A stretch of DNA of 64,000 nucleotides from Oopsacas minuta (GCA_024704765.1 JAKMXF010000020.1:1-64000), one strand, 5' to 3'. Shown: positions 51,577 to 63,342, counted from the stretch's first letter. Notes: a model not told the origin generated them from the sequence alone. Program-made: numbers and translations.

Positions 51577-53690
51577 CAGTGGCGTTGCCAGGAATAGTTG
51601 GAAGGGGGGGGCAATTAAAATTATTTATTACACTAAACATAACAAATAACCTAATTACCAATATATTATATTACGTGTATCAATTTATTTTTAATGAATA
51701 TACTATGAATGATGTCTATAGAAATCTAATCAACACAGCACATACTAAGATAATTGTGATCTCCTATCTGCCATGGATACAAACTTAGAAATGAGGTCTT
51801 CATTATCTAGAGAAAGCAGAATTTCTTTCTCTATTGAGCAAAACATCAATGATTCTAGACGATCTTCCACATTGTAGACCGTAACTTAGTTTTAATCAAC
51901 AACAATTTAGAAAAACTTCTTTCTGCATGGGCTGTAGTCACTGGGAGTGTGTATAATATTCGATACATGTAGCAGAGTTCTGTGTATGAATGAGGTAATT
52001 CGTTATAAACATCAAGTAAAGGAGTGTCTTGTTTTATAAAATACCTTGCTAGGTTCCATTCAGCTATAAAACGGTCTGGAGATATATTTTCGTATTGATG
52101 AACAAGTTTTAGAAGATTTTCCTCTGCGTCAATTGCTTCAAAATTCCTTGGATCCAAAATGCAAAATTAATTAATTGATTGGGGAAGCGAGAATTAATCT
52201 CAGAAATCATACTATCGACCAATGCTTCTAAAAGTTTAACTCACAAATTATCTTTGGTGAAAATATTATTCCTGTATAAGGATTATTATCAACTCTGCAA
52301 GAAACTCTTCTTGAGCGTTGAGTGCTAAATTCAGTATTGAGGCCTAACTTCATCGCGAAATTCTGTGCTTTACTAAACGCATCTAACCAGACGTTTTCAG
52401 TACATAATCTCTGTAGTTCAATTTTTAAAACATGGATCTGTTTGTTTGCCCTTAATAGGTCTATTTGACAACTCTACAATGTTTCACTTATTATATTGAT
52501 AGCTAAAAGGATAGGAGTAACTGTCACAAGAGAAATTACAATGTTGAAAGTAGATATACTCGCTAAAAGGCCAGTAGCTGTACCTCTAGAATTACCATCT
52601 GTAGTAGTAGCACAAATATGTTCAATTGTATCCAAAACTGATTTGAATACAACTTCATTTAGTAATCGTTGACAAGAAGACGCCCTGCAATTCCACCTTG
52701 TGTCGGATAGGCCAACTAAGTGTAAAGGACGTTGATCAGATTGTATCTCTCTCTGTCTCTCAATAAAATAACTATGTCGCTGCGCACTACCTTCAATAAA
52801 TGTGTATGCTAATTCCAGTATTCCAAAGAATTTACTTGCTTCAATGTTTCTATGATTACAAACAGAATTCACTAACATTCGAATCAGACTATGGGAATAA
52901 CAATGAGTGAATAGTGCTAGTGGATTTAACTCGCGAATTCTTGCTTGTACACCTTTGTGAATCCCGGACATGTTGCTTCCTCCGTCATAACTTTGGCCAA
53001 CTATGTCTTCAACTTGTAATCCAAGACTATTTAGTTTTTTAATTAGAATATTTGTAATTTCTTCTCCAGTAGTAATAGGATGTTCTAATAAAGCAGCAAA
53101 ACTCTCTGAAATTTTGCCATTTAAAGGGTTCACATATCTGACAATGACAGCAAGCTGTTCTTTATGGGATACCTCAGTTGTTTCATCCATCAACACTGCA
53201 ATAATACCTGCCTCTTTAATGTAACCAATAATTTTACTTCTGATTTCATTCCCAATAATCGAAATAATTTCATTCTGAATTTGTGGACTAAGGTACATTT
53301 GATTCTTACTTGAGTTTGTTAAGTACTCATTCAAGACATCATCTCCAATGTTTGCCAAAAAGTGTACAAATTCAATATATACACCTCTATTATTTGAGAT
53401 AATACTTTCATCGTGACCACGAAAAGGTAACGAAAGCTTCCCTAAAAGCTTCACAATACTGAATAACTCTCCGATCATTTTCTGTTTCGAATTATAGCGT
53501 GTGATCGATTTGTTTGTTGTTGAGCAACTTCATTTGATATTAGTGTATCATTCGGCTTAGAGCACATGAAGTTAAATACTATCTTTCAAAATCAGAGTGA
53601 GTTTTACTTTGTTCATGTGAATGAAATCCACGATCTTTTTCCAAAGCTTTTTTCCAATTGTCGAAACCGGTTTCTGAAAATGCCTTGTCT
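51577..53690 (-). mobile_element. hAT (ZMYM1/ZNF862-like) transposase pseudogene with one terminus
   Basis: AFSETGFDNWKKALEK (TTF-like), LPFRGHDE, AVLMDETTEVSHKEQL, GQSYDGGSNMSG, FTHCYSHSL, LSDTRW, TLPVTTAHAERSFSKL; stop at 51745. Terminus cagtggcgttgcc at 51577; the other end is absent. Confidence 0.88.
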
Positions 53691-57085: not shown

Positions 57086-59682
57086 TTTGGGGCAGATTAT
57101 TCGATTCATTACATCAGCGATTGGCAACTTGGGATCCACTAAAACTTAAAATGTATACAAGAATATGTGAGGGATACACAAAATATAACAAAAGTGACAT
57201 TATGATATGACAGATTATTTCATAGGATTAGTGTGACTACAAGGAGCTGGAAATTGAACAGCAACAATTAATATTACGAAACTACTTACCTTTAGGTTGA
57301 GTAAAGACAATAAATATTTAGAGATATCTTTAGTAGAGTAAAATAGAATAATAGTACCGGAAATAATATAAAATCAAAATACCATCAAGTTATATAATTA
57401 ATGATATACGTAATGTGATGCTACTGTATTCTCTTGTACATATTCTGAAATTTATGTGTTCTCAATTTATGGCCCAGATTATTGCAGAACCGCAACTAAA
57501 CGGAACTAAACAAGCCAATTGAACCACAATTCCGTGAGAGGAGCAGAACGAACGCTTGATAACTACAATATCAAATTAAATAGACCAAACGAACTGAACA
57601 GGTATCTAGTTGAGTCGAACGGAATGCTCTGTTTCAGTTACTTATTGACCCTGTCATTCCTTCGAATGGAAATTCAAACTAAGAACATTCAATGTTGCCA
57701 TTTGTCGAATTGTAAAGATTTCCATAGGAACAGTTGAATTTTGAAGGAATTTGAAATAATATGGAGTTACTAGTCATGGTTGATGACTGTTATATTCTGA
57801 GGCCTTTCTCATCGTCCCAAATATTACAATACTTGCTCCTCACAATCTGTAGGAATCCATCAACCTCTTTAACGATGAAACTTCTATCTTCATCGTCTGT
57901 ATACTGTGCCTCTGCATTCAGGTTAAATCTGCCATCGATTTTCCTAAACTTTGATATAAGAATCCTCCCATGAGGGTAGGAATAAATACATAATCATTTG
58001 ACCAAATAATTTGTGAAGTGCCATGTCTATCCGTCTGCCAGTACATTCTTAATGGTGTTACTGCAATTGTTGACTACGTGAAAATTATGTTGCTGTCCCG
58101 TTTAATAACTCTAGCTGGCCAAAGATCCTGCAATAACATTCTCTCCTTTATACTCCTTTTACGCTTAAAATCCGAGAGGAGCTCATTAGGCCAGGCTAAT
58201 GTACAAATTCCCAGGTGTTAGAATTTAGATTATTCACAGTGGACCCATCTATATTTCAACAAATGCCCATAATGTGTAGTTGTTATATTATTCAAATAGA
58301 ATTTTATAACTAGAGACATGTTTGGGATTTTGGAAGTGCAAGAAAAGTGCAGTACACTGTACACGTACATTAACGGACCGTGCTTAACAAAATGTGGTAG
58401 AAATGACATAGTGGGACTACTGGTGAAAATTGTTAGACCTTAGATTATTGTGCAGAATCGTGATGATGTAGTTACAAGGAGCTGAAAATGTAATCAAGAA
58501 ACTAACAAATCTACTCAACTTTAGCTTGTATTAAAAAGCCCAATAAGTATTTAGAGATTATACGAATTTCCCTTGCTATTACGCGAGCTTGCTATGAGAG
58601 GAAGTATTTATAAAAATATTAGTCTCTGAAGATCTTTTGAGGACACAAACCATTCATAGATTGATGGAATTTACAGAACATAGGTTTTAGTATTACAGCA
58701 CTAGAGAGAATAAGACAGTTACTTGAGAAAATTGTCATATAAGTAGGAAATTCAGTTAAGACCATGGGACAAACATTCAGAATTATAGAAACTCGTTCAA
58801 TTGTATCTAAACTGGAAGAAACCCTGGTCCTGAGTATTATACAAATGTATCAAAAATTTGAGCATTTTTAATATTACCCTATTTATATATGAGAAACTTG
58901 AAAATGTTAAATTCAGAATCAGCGTACTCAAATACCCATATATAGCTGTGAAGAACAAGTATCTACGTATATTTTGATATTTCAATTATTTGTTCACTTT
59001 ATATTCATAAAACAATAATAAATTTACAAATGCGAAATTCGGATTCAGCGTACTTGATTACAGGCCCGGTCCTTGAGTTGGGTTCTAAATCCGCCGCCCT
59101 AGGCAAATTGGAAGCCGTGCTGCCCTCCAAATTTTCGAATACATGTCCTAAAAATACTAATTTGAAAAAAACTAAATGAAGTGTAGGTAGTAAGTTATAA
59201 CAGTAACTTAAGTATCAAAATTTAATTTTCTAGCATTAGTTTTAGCAAATTCAGTCACTAGTTTCTTAAGATCTAGCTTTTGCGCTATTTCATTTTCAAC
59301 AGATATTGTTGACAAGCCCACAAGTCTTTCCTGTCTCATTGAAGAACGAATATATGTTTTTATCAGTTTCAGGTTCGAAAAATTTCTCTCACCACCTGCA
59401 ACAGAAACTGGGAGTGTTAACAGGATATGTAGAGCGATAAAAGTATTTGTAAAATTAACAACAAAAGAGGTCAGGTTGGAACCAGCCCTTATTTGGGCAG
59501 GCCGCGCACCCAGGGGTGAGTGATATTCGGGATATATTTATGAGGGGGCGGGAAAATGGCCATATCAGATGCTATCTCCATGTTCATAATACATTAGGTT
59601 GGACGAAATTTCAACTATGCATACTTAGGATGTGGGATGCCTAACTCTAGATGAAGTCCTGATTGGTAACTGATAAACTGAG

Positions 59683-62677
59683 CACAGTGGCACGGCATGT
59701 GGAAATAGGTGAAAAAAATATAACCTCAAATTGCTTTATAGTGTTGATATTTGAATTCAGCACCCCCACAAACCTCGGAAAACATTTGACATCTCTACAA
59801 TAGACTTTCCATTTAGCTCCTACGTCTATTCCAATGAGAGCATAATTGAAATTCGAAAGATTGATTTACGGTTTCAATTTCGGTCATGATGTAATTTTGA
59901 ATAATATGGATTCTCCACGTCAAATAACTGCTATTTATAGTATACCAATCGAAAGCTCTTATGTTGCTGAATAATAAATCACGTTAATCTTGGCTCCAAT
60001 GAACAGATGGAATTTACTATTCTCATTTTAAACAAGCTTGTTCGTACAAGTACAATAAATAGAAACACGTTTCATTAAAACTCTAGTACTTTTTTTGCCT
60101 TCACTTGCGGAACTTTCCATTGCACTTTCCTAATAGCTCTTTTCGTCCTCTACAAAATACACTTTAAATTATGGTGTCAGGAAGTGTCAACGATATTTTT
60201 TTTTGCGATTTTAAATATAATCCATTCACAATTATCTAATTTTTGGCCCATATAAATCATAAATAATTGTTGTGGTTGTTTATTAGCACATTTTTCATTA
60301 TGAATAACGAAGATGCATACACGTTCTTAACTGCACAAAAGAATAAAACAATCACTTCTCTCGCGTCCTCGTTTATTGTCCTCAATAATTTGGAAGAAAC
60401 AGAGCATGATACAGTTCGGAGAAAATTTTCGACCCTCAGAGAAGATAGGAGAGAATACCTGAAACGAGCCGATATAACTACTTGGAATGCGATACCTTTT
60501 CATACACCACTTAAACACCCGAGATTGAGTACAGGTTATCAATGCTCAGATGAAGTCATGGTGATAGGGAGTGTTTCTTCTAGCCAATCAACCTCTGTTT
60601 TCGAAGAAGATTTTAGTAAGCCCACCCGTAAGCCTCTGAGGGAATTATCAACTAAAGGTCTTCGCAGCCGATTGTCCTCCTTACTAACACATCTTGAAAA
60701 GGTTGCTGTACAAGAGAATGTTTCCAGTAAAGAACTATCCTGTTACCTGATGATGCTATGTTCACAGACTGAATACGACTTTACTACTACCAAGTTCTGT
60801 AAAGAAATTATTGCTAAGGGAAGCTTCGGTCCAGTCTGCAATAAACTAACCTGCGATAAAGCTGCGTTCTTGATGGATTCTTTAGAAATTGGAAAGAAGA
60901 AATACATCGATTTAAGACGTTTCTTGCTTTCAGATGTCCAGCTTCCAGGTTACAATCGATTAGCTACCTATCGATCTCAAATTTGCTTGACTAATGACAT
61001 CTTTTCAGTTGATCGAGAACATCGGGTAGGCATTGCTGTATCTTACAAAAAGCTTCTGACTCGTACAGTAAACAGAATATTGACTGCTTCTGCCAATGAA
61101 ATTCCCAGCGCCAGCAATCCTAAAAGGATACGAATTTCAGATGGACTTGACGGTTCTGGCTCTCACCGGGTTTATCAGCAAGCGACTCACCCCAATATTT
61201 CAACAAAAAGTTTTATTTTATTCGGGTTTAAGGTGATTTCCATATCCGACACCGATAACAAACTGATTTGGAAAAACCCTCTACCAAATTCTCCTTTCTC
61301 AATTAGACCCGTTGCGATACTAGCTCTACAGGAGAACGAAGACAATATTCGATATCTTATGGATACACTAATCAATAAGGAGTCCACAGAGATAACGGAA
61401 AAGGGTTTAGAACTAACAAGCGGATTTTGTGAAGTTGAAATTCAACGTTCACAATTGGATGGCAAAATGGCTAAGATTATTAGTGGAGCTGGGGTGCATG
61501 TTGCCAGTTCTGCACAGCGACATTCAAACAAATCCATGATCCGGATATCGTAAAAGACGGTTTTCCAATTAATCGATCCATCACAGACCTGAAAGTATTA
61601 TTTGATGAAGTTAACGAAGAGGAGTTTCTATCATTATCTTCTGACAACAGATTCAACGTTACACACAGACCAATATCTGACTTAGAAATCATACCCAGTT
61701 CGCCTTTGCATGCATATCTCCGATGTTTTGGCTGGTTTTTACATCTAATTAGCCATTTGCACGCAGGAGTATTTAAGTGGTCACCAACTTCTAAGAGAGT
61801 CTCAGATGCTAAAACTTTCGTTACAAGTTTAATTAAAGACAATCTCAATATTATTATTGACATCCCTTCAACACAAGGTGGCAACGACTACTGGTAATGT
61901 GGTAAGACGATGCTTGATAAGAAAGGATGACAACGATCAAGATTTCCTCTACTGGGTTTTGACAGTGATCCCGTCTGAGTTCAAGTCCCACATAATTGAA
62001 ATTCACACATGCCTAGGAGCAATCCTACGCGTCTATAATAGCAGCAGAAGAGTGGATACAGAAGAACTAGCGCTTGTTTGCAGTAATATCTACCAGTCAA
62101 TTCTCTGTGCATTTCCTTGGGCTAATGTTTCCCCGACGTTACACAAACTGTTGGCACATGCATCGGAAATCATCTCAACGTTTAATGATGGACATGGGCT
62201 AGAGAACTTATCTGAAGAAGGACTAGAGGCTTCTAACAAATATATTCGGAGATACAGAGATCGTCTTGCTCGCAAGTTTTCATTTGAAGAAAATTTAAAG
62301 GATGTATTTGTTCGATTGATTTCTCACAGTGATCCCATGCTGTTAATGAATCGCAAGTTTTCTATTCCAAGGCCTCCATCTAGCCAAGGACTTAGAAGTA
62401 GCCAAGATATTTTAGTGAACACCCTTATTCGTGATCATGAAGATTATAATGATGATTAAAAGTAAACCTCTCAATCGATTAATAGAAAATTGGGGAATTT
62501 TCACACCTCAGATAGGTGACAATGACGTCATAACTTTGTCACCTGAAGGGATAGAGAAAAATGAGTATCCCATTCGATTCGTTGGGCTCGAAAACCTATA
62601 TGACAATAATACATTTTGAGGACCTATGTGCCATCAAAATGCCTATTTCCACATTCTGACCATTTCGTGCCACTGTG
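59683..62677 (+). mobile_element. Complete RAG1-like/Transib transposon (2995 bp) with RSS-heptamer TIRs and 5-bp TSD
   Basis: CTGAG|CACAGTG at 59678-59689 and CACTGTG|CTGAG at 62671-62682. Shared internal TIR block ATGTGGAAATAGG. Encodes a RAG1-type transposase. Confidence 0.95.
60300..62459 (+). pseudogene. RAG1-like DDE transposase (~719 aa), two compensating frameshifts
   Basis: NBD-like PTRKPLRELSTKGLRSRLSSLLTHLEKVAVQE; GLDGSG (D1, ~61149); LDGK (D2, 61458); CQFC (61503-61514, shifted frame); PLHA; TTTGNVVRR; LHKLLAH (Zn His pair); SEEGLEASNK (catalytic E); HSDP. Shifts at ~61491-61494 and ~61876-61885. Confidence 0.93.
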
Positions 62678-63342
62678 CTGAGGAAGTTACGGCCCTGATA
62701 AATTCTTAAAACAAACAAAACATTGAGTACTCGGAATTTACGAGGAAAGAATATTTAGAGAATTGGCTCATTTAAGTTTACGGATTATAATATGAAATTG
62801 GGTGAAAAATAAGTCTAATTGATGTGTGTTTTGGATTATGGGTGAGGGATAATCAGAGGATGAGCATTTTCAATTTACAGAATCAAGTGATGGTTGTGTG
62901 TACTTCAATTGTTAACTCAGATTACAAATATGCCGTCCACTAAATTGTGCTGCCCTAGGCGACTGCCTAGTTCGCCTAGTGGAAGGACCGGCCCTGCTGA
63001 TTACTCATATATGTCTCTGTTGGCCCCATGATACCATGTTGAAATCTAATCTCTAGCATTCTTTTGAATTTTACATAGATATGTATGGAAATATGATTAA
63101 TTGCTTAGGGGCGTGAAAATATACATGGCAGAAATGTTCAAATGTCAGGTGCACAACTAGATGTCACTATGATACATGTCAAATTTCGAGTCTCAATCTC
63201 CATAGGTGTGAACAGGAGAGCGAACACATATCTATACGTATATGTATTTACCGACTTGCTAAGAAAGTCAACCATTTAGAACTGTGCCACTATATTATAG
63301 TATAGTATAGTGGTACAGTATAAAAGTAAAATATGACTAATC

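Follow-up and report, generated by a model that had tools for sequence, protein, structure and literature searches.

The window analysed here, a stretch of 64,000 nucleotides from the glass sponge Oopsacas minuta (GCA_024704765.1 JAKMXF010000020.1:1-64000), contains at positions 59683-62677 a DNA transposon of 2995 bp whose ends can be read directly from the sequence. At a probability of about 0.8, this element inserted recently and is a non-autonomous member of a Transib-superfamily transposon family with many copies in O. minuta, which encodes a RAG1-core-like transposase with a domain resembling the nonamer-binding domain (NBD) of RAG1 and which has no RAG2-like partner. The copy is non-autonomous because its transposase gene carries two private frameshifts. 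An earlier description made from the DNA alone, here called the sequence-only reading, had assigned the element to the RAG1L grade and had suggested that, in a non-bilaterian host, it could represent an early branch intermediate between Transib and the RAG1-RAG2 transposon. The following sections describe the ends of the element, its gene and the NBD-like domain, and then weigh the alternatives.

Ends of the element and evidence for insertion

The left end reads CTGAG followed by CACAGTGGCACG, and the right end reads CGTGCCACTGTG followed by CTGAG. The heptamer CACAGTG, present at 59683-59689 and as its reverse complement at 62671-62677, fits the pattern CACWRTG and resembles the heptamer of the recombination signal sequence. 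The terminal 12-mer CACAGTGGCACG occurs twice in the window, only at the two element ends and in inverted orientation, and two matches were reached in none of 100 shuffles. Likewise, the 13-bp block ATGTGGAAATAGG has only two occurrences in the window, 7 bp inside the left heptamer and 16 bp inside the right one. The 3' end is therefore 9 bp longer than the 5' end, with the additional bases lying between the 12-mer and the block, which confirms that the terminal inverted repeats (TIRs) are asymmetric.

Contigs of the source sample, which holds 78% of the sampled words of the stretch, were aligned to it. The depth over the element is 4-10 times that of the flanks, and in several contigs unrelated flanks set in precisely at 59683 and directly after 62677. 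Furthermore, an element-free contig (depth 108) joins 59678 to 62682 with the three letters CGG between them. The excess of depth, the foreign flanks at the exact ends and the empty site place the borders beyond chance; the borders, the target-site duplication (TSD) and the TIRs are thus real, as the sequence-only reading had described them. Because the right flank of the element-free contig differs by about 10% (219 bp compared, with 19 other letters and 7 gaps), this contig probably represents an empty site that is paralogous or allelic; in that case the Transib would have landed in another repeat or the insertion would be polymorphic.

One relative bears on the leader of the element. On contig L002, which carries the zinc-knuckle-bearing relative P0107 and is without its 3' end, CACAGTG stands at 1279-1285, and 607 bp separate it from the start codon downstream. 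The O. minuta element has a leader of 617 bp, and a long 5' leader of similar size may be a trait of the family. Both ends are missing from contig L001, which holds P0001, the closest relative outside O. minuta, and is itself degraded.

The transposase gene and its two breaks

The transposase is distributed over three frames (60300-61493, 61496-61882 and 61884-62459), which amount to about 720 residues. The product consists of an N-terminal helical domain, a linker, an NBD-like three-helix domain, the DDBD, the pre-RNase H region, RNase H, ZnC2/ZnH2, the C-terminal domain and an acidic tail (Table 1). In alignments to RAG1, BbRAG1L and HzTransib the catalytic residues D, D and E and the zinc ligands C, C, H and H were all located, at RAG1-equivalent positions, in agreement with the RAG1-core-type DDE/zinc transposase recognized earlier.

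Both interruptions are small deletions. In the source sample an extra G behind 61490 is found in 431 of 467 depth units, and CA behind 61881 in 557 of 557. The annotated paralogue P0242 is open across both positions and reads GGTTTTGN at the second. Since the longer forms dominate in the source sample and P0242 is uninterrupted, both deletions are private to this copy.

The public gene model of this copy, P0238 (591 residues, annotated 'Dna-mediated transposase'), runs from ...ISGAGV straight to ATTTGNVV..., taking 61497-61880, or piece 2, as an intron. The model thereby conceals both frameshifts and drops the ZnC2 region, and the models of the paralogues P0239 and P0242 likewise omit internal stretches.

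No second gene is found inside the TIRs, where the sole long open reading frames (ORFs) are the three transposase pieces. The next largest ORF in the 2995 bp has at most 134 residues and lies antisense within the transposase, and there is no RAG2L (kelch) gene. With about 720 residues the protein is no longer than its Transib relatives (733-768 residues), contrary to the expectation of the sequence-only reading that Transib transposases are shorter.

An NBD homologue in front of the DDBD

The domain on which the RAG1L proposal had been founded is genuine. A profile built on residues 98-236, covering the NBD and the DDBD, was searched among 177,635 sequences, and vertebrate RAG1 ranked first (E 1.4e-6 to 2.8e-5, residues 389-512 in the mouse protein). 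The same profile matched the isolated RAG1 NBD chain 3gna (96 residues) at E 4.4e-4, while BbRAG1L reached only 0.033 and HzTransib 0.025, the latter over the DDBD part alone. Another family profile (A1) matches 3gna at E 0.0034. Expressed in bits, the family scores 31.5 against vertebrate RAG1 in this module and 17.4 against BbRAG1L. The hidden Markov model (HMM) alignment pairs PTRKPLRELSTKGLRSRL with RPRQHLLSLTRRAQKHRL, reproducing the alignment first made by eye; the NBD-like and DDBD-like peptides picked out at that time are residues 108-125 and 183-207 of piece 1. It also pairs R110, R122 and R124 with R393, K405 and R407 of RAG1, which we take to be DNA-contacting residues.

The predicted structures lead to the same result. 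On the AlphaFold (AF2) model of piece 1, the alignment of NBD-containing RAG1 chains starts at model residue 106, equivalent to RAG1 389, whereas HzTransib and the NBD-less RAG1 chains align only from model residue 180. A separate model of residues 98-236 has a pLDDT of 88 (85-96 in the NBD region), and its top 22 Foldseek matches are all NBD-containing RAG1 chains; on 3gna_A it gives a TM of 0.80 and a root-mean-square deviation of 2.1 Å over 66 of 68 residues. The segment is conserved in 40 relatives, none of which has the GRPR/K motif, a basic R/K-K pair being all that they have in common at this site. Sequence profile and fold thus both establish true homology of the N-terminal segment with the NBD, and the DDBD follows it.

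The N-terminal helical domain (residues 1-66) has a weak fold match to the N-terminal helix-turn-helix of Mos1 (Z 3.9), and an Atlas feature search was uninformative. The domain is visible by eye in the ctenophore Transib of the supplement of Tao et al. 2022, and no description of it was found in the papers on RAG and Transib that were consulted.

Table 1. Features of the Transib element of Oopsacas minuta (positions counted from the first letter of the window)
Feature	Position	Strand	Remarks
Target-site duplication, left copy, CTGAG	59678-59682	no strand	identical to 62678-62682; AAA precedes CTGAG
5' TIR, short form	59683-59709	+	heptamer CACAGTG 59683-59689; 12-mer to 59694; 2-bp gap; 13-bp block ATGTGGAAATAGG 59697-59709
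Transposase piece 1	60300-61493	+	N-terminal domain, NBD, DDBD, pre-RNase H and the beginning of RNase H; codons for catalytic D at 61149-61151 and 61458-61460
N-terminal helical domain, residues 1-66	60300-60497	+	AF2 pLDDT 95-97, four helices; conserved in relatives
NBD-like three-helix domain, residues 106-179	60615-60836	+	KPTRK at the RAG1 GGRPR position; profile and fold matches
DDBD-like segment, residues 180-236	60837-61007	+	aligns to HzTransib chain 5-58 and RAG1 459-512; in the structure alignment, model 180 = HzTransib 21 = RAG1 459
Break 1 (frameshift)	61491-61494	+	G run one base short relative to most other family copies
Transposase piece 2	61496-61882	+	ZnC2 cysteines 61502-61504 and 61511-61513, then about 35 residues absent from HzTransib and present in BbRAG1L
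Break 2 (frameshift)	61882-61884	+	CA dinucleotide missing relative to other copies
Transposase piece 3	61884-62459	+	ZnH2 histidines 62142-62144 and 62157-62159; codon for catalytic E 62226-62228; C-terminal domain; knuckle-free acidic tail; stop codon
3' TIR, long form	62642-62677	-	12-mer 62666-62677; 11-bp gap; 13-bp block 62642-62654
Target-site duplication, right copy, CTGAG	62678-62682	no strand	GAAG after it

Placement among Transib and RAG1-like transposases

Outside the NBD, the transposase is nearest to HzTransib. Piece 1, used as a single sequence against PDB, matched only HzTransib (E 4.6e-7). The family profile scores 211 bits with HzTransib, 165 with BbRAG1L and about 100 with RAG1, and the corresponding values for the natural paralogue P0242 are 84.5, 46.1 and 24 bits. 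On the AF2 model of piece 1 (pLDDT 86), the structure-based identity is 21% to HzTransib, 16% to BbRAG1L and 13-15% to RAG1. From the DDBD to RNase H, model residues 180-396 (217 residues) are matched by a segment with a length of 213 residues in HzTransib, of 259 in RAG1 and of 280 in BbRAG1L, and the alignment gaps place the extra residues of the last two within the pre-RNase-H region. This length, which matches that of HzTransib and is shorter than those of RAG1 and BbRAG1L, indicates that the pre-RNase-H insertion of the RAG1(L) type (the extra loop of Tao et al. 2022) is absent.

The Pfam family RAG1 (PF12940) stays below its gathering cut-off of 25, with 18.8 bits for piece 3 and 23.8 bits for P0242. 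Piece 1 gave no Pfam match to a zinc finger, a RING or the RAG1 N-terminal region, and its residues 1-105 contain one cysteine and are plain helical in the AF2 model. The C-terminal tail has no cysteines, and the CCGHC/CCHC knuckle is absent from it. A match to DUF3895 obtained with Pfam on the three pieces (E 0.02) was set aside as marginal. On every tested defining feature except the NBD, the element is a Transib and not a RAGL transposon.

The NBD itself does not separate the two groups. Tao et al. 2022 described an NBD-equivalent in both Transib subgroups (PMC9435367), and according to Martin et al. 2023 asymmetric TIRs, CTT-CCGHC and NBD-GRPR/K are all known from Transibs (PMC10462144). 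Because it has been reported in Transibs by both studies, the NBD is not diagnostic of RAG1 or RAG1L, and the distinction on which the sequence-only reading relied falls away. Subgroup I of Tao et al. is characterized by TIRs of unequal structure (asymmetric), by a ZnB stretch that has been retained and by a tail with a zinc knuckle (CTT1), and Subgroup II has lost the ZnB stretch alpha11-alpha12; the same authors propose Subgroup I as an intermediate toward RAG1L (PMC9435367). The idea of an intermediate between Transib and RAG is, in substance, this proposal. In profile and paralogue alignments, about 35-40 residues following the ZnC2 CxxC are present in the sponge family and in BbRAG1L and not in HzTransib. 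These additional residues, together with the asymmetric ends, make Subgroup I the best fit, the knuckle aside, and the element is probably of this type. In its structure it is an NBD-bearing member of an already described kind of Transib and not a RAG1-RAG2-type element.

Comparison with known systems

HzTransib (Helicoverpa zea; PDB 6pqn and others) resembles the sponge element in having a single gene, a 5-bp TSD, CACAGTG-type ends and a RAG1-core-like DDE/C2H2 transposase without a RAG2 partner, and it is the best sequence match, of equal length from the DDBD to RNase H. However, the HzTransib chain begins at the DDBD and has no NBD; it is also without the approximately 35 residues after the ZnC2 CxxC of the sponge family, which in addition has the 66-residue N-terminal helical domain.

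The Subgroup I Transibs, and with them those of the ctenophore Mnemiopsis leidyi (Mle), share with the sponge family the asymmetric TIRs, the NBD-equivalent, a ZnB stretch whose retention in the sponge family is putative, and a non-bilaterian host (PMC9435367). The Mle protein (Supplementary Data 2) has the same order of an N-terminal helical part, an acidic linker, a basic RK-type motif with NBD-like helices, an EIGK..Y DDBD motif, the core and an acidic end, and we would place the Mle proteins in Subgroup I. Like the other knuckle-bearing relatives, the Mle Transib carries the zinc knuckle (PMC9435367); the sponge family, in contrast, has no CCHC/CCGHC knuckle (CTT1), a defining feature of Subgroup I.

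The RAGL transposons (ProtoRAG BbRAG1L/BbRAG2L, PDB 6b40; RAGL-A and RAGL-B) have in common with the sponge element the heptamer-like ends, the 5-bp TSD, the ZnC2 stretch and the order of core domains, including an NBD-type module. The sponge element differs from them in having no RAG2L, N-terminal zinc motifs or RING, CCGHC tail or pre-RNase-H insertion, and in scoring lower against them than against HzTransib. As to the vertebrate RAG1 NBD (PDB 3gna; RAG1 389-458), the three-helix fold, the significant profile match and the location directly before the DDBD are alike, whereas GGRPR is replaced by KPTRK and, in place of an A-rich nonamer spaced by 12 and 23 bp, the candidate target is the 13-bp block spaced by 7 and 16 bp.

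Host, copies and spread of the family

The host is O. minuta. The window contains an ORF of 824 residues that matches 'Nuclear cap-binding protein subunit 1-like [Oopsacas minuta]' (NCBP1) with 100% identity, and the NCBP1 gene and the transposase model P0238 lie on one O. minuta contig of 89,668 bp. Paralogues at 98, 95, 93 and 88% identity are present on other O. minuta contigs, where the family has at least 10 loci besides this copy. The search for other genomic copies thus returned close paralogues, as well as flanks of other loci that meet the element at the same end bases, and the family is multi-copy and young. Other families in O. minuta stand at 40-57% identity, and several of them bear the UniRef label 'V(D)J recombination-activating protein 1'.

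A word-indexed search with the family alignment reached only the P0096 (krill-type) subfamily, and an exhaustive search listed the close relatives. Among the distant relatives, P0096 (krill type), P0107 and P0141 have the zinc knuckle and P0178 has a variant of it outside the search pattern; all close paralogues and sponge-clade families compared are without it. These sponge-clade families without a knuckle still have an acidic DILV..L end. The acidic C-terminal motif (D/E-I/L-L/M-V-x-x-L/F), at 62400-62459 in this copy, is conserved with or without a preceding zinc knuckle.

Several observations concern the distribution of the family and its relatives. The runs X5-X7, labelled as three other organisms, contain the family at high depth; its nucleotide identity there is 85-99%, and the termini are identical. 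These runs hold internally deleted forms, with joints that skip 1351-1916 bp and a depth at the ends several times that in the middle, and the O. minuta host flanks are absent from them. The copies could derive from related sponge species or from horizontal spread. The knuckle-bearing family of P0096, P0199-P0208 and P0206/P0216/P0220 (about 746 residues) has members annotated in the krill Meganyctiphanes norvegica, and contigs of about 2.5-4 kb carrying it are frequent in ENA assemblies, which suggests that samples containing crustaceans hold many recent copies. Finally, an ORF of 333 residues with a DUF4371 domain (E 3e-24) lies on the minus strand at 52474-53478, about 6 kb upstream of the Transib.

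Alternative explanations

The proposal of a RAG1L grade, in which the NBD would distinguish the element from Transib and mark it as an early-branching intermediate, draws on real features: the NBD homology holds, the family is nearer to vertebrate RAG1 in this module than BbRAG1L is to the family (31.5 against 17.4 bits), the ZnC2 stretch is shared with BbRAG1L and not with HzTransib, and the host is a non-bilaterian. When the HMM and structural comparisons are extended from the NBD to RAG1, ProtoRAG and Transib as wholes, the NBD fold stands and the RAG1L grade does not. HzTransib gives the highest overall score, the Pfam RAG1 match (23.8 bits) remains under the cut-off, and RAG2L, N-terminal Cys motifs, RING, CCGHC tail and pre-RNase-H insertion are all missing, while the NBD has lost its diagnostic value. 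Neither does the host decide for this proposal: the trees of Transibs are not congruent with those of their hosts (PMC9435367), and the sponge host therefore says little about the age of the element. The RAG1L grade is accordingly regarded as improbable.

The opposite view would make the element an ordinary Transib of the HzTransib type (Subgroup II of Tao et al.), with an NBD likeness due to chance. A small helical domain finds fold matches easily, there is no GRPR/K motif, and overall the best match is to HzTransib; yet chance would have to account for the profile matches to RAG1 389-512 and 3gna among 177,635 sequences, for 22 top Foldseek matches all with an NBD, for 66 of 68 residues superposed at 2.1 Å, for a location exactly N-terminal to the DDBD, as in RAG1, and for conservation across 40 relatives. 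Subgroup II is further disfavored by the ZnC2 residues that HzTransib does not have, and the whole explanation strikes us as quite improbable. Even less credit is given to a contaminant or an assembly chimera from another animal, or to a domesticated host gene. It is true that short-read contigs break at the element borders, that no listed contig bridges this junction and that runs under the labels of four other organisms contain related sequence. However, the identical O. minuta protein shares its contig with the transposase, the family recurs at 10 or more loci on other O. minuta contigs and the four source-sample runs hold 71-78% of the sampled words of the stretch, and the chimera feared at the outset was not borne out; the TIRs, the TSD, the frameshifts and the multi-copy depth speak against domestication.

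The preferred explanation, a recent, non-autonomous copy of a multi-copy Transib with an NBD-like domain, has its own weak points. The placement among Transibs, based on scores, identities and indels, is a probable one, and the extra ZnC2 stretch is equated with alpha11-alpha12 (ZnB) of Tao et al. by alignment only, so that this equivalence is putative. The apparent activity of the family is judged from the similarity of its copies, and a search for RNA runs gave none that is known to be RNA. The NBD-like domain has KPTRK in place of GRPR/K, the spacings are 7/16 instead of 12/23, and the block does not have the form of an A-tract nonamer. Moreover, the NBD of BbRAG1L, which has no GRPR/K motif, adds little to activity and is only auxiliary (PMC10462144); with KPTRK at this position in the sponge protein, the role in reading the block that is proposed below may be wrong.

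Possible mechanism and significance

By analogy with the chemistry of HzTransib and RAG, intact paralogues would excise and insert such copies by nick-hairpin cut-and-paste, acting in trans on broken ones like this, and a 5-bp stagger at integration would generate the 5-bp duplication. A putative dimer of the NBD-like domain could read the 13-bp subterminal block at its two distances from the heptamer (7 and 16 bp), and one short and one long end might be paired in the manner of the RAG1 NBD on 12/23 signals. According to Martin et al. 2023, the NBD and the CCGHC tail are redundant modes of DNA binding, one of which tends to be lost (PMC10462144). Because the family is without the CCHC/CCGHC knuckle kept by its distant relatives, binding of the distal DNA may depend mainly on the NBD-like domain.

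The current model of RAG evolution is left unchanged, since in the published model the Transib from which RAGL arose already has the NBD, CCGHC and asymmetric TIRs. In the text of Tao et al. 2022 and in the supplements consulted, no sponge is mentioned (PMC9435367), and no report of a Transib in Porifera was found in the literature. The element described here documents, by sequence and by fold, a young Transib family in this phylum, which unites a clear RAG1-type NBD with ends that are asymmetric by 9 bp and has neither a zinc-knuckle tail nor a RAG2 partner.

A tentative and rather unlikely extension is that the sponge lineage kept the ancestral RAG1-type NBD and the asymmetric ends and lost the knuckle tail, in parallel to the route that led to vertebrate RAG and here within a RAG2-less Transib. 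If this were true, the enzyme would enforce the pairing of short and long ends via the NBD alone, and a 12/23-like rule would predate RAG2 and not need it. As a natural 'NBD-only' Transib with many near-identical copies, the family offers a convenient system in which NBD-mediated asymmetric end pairing can be tested without RAG2.

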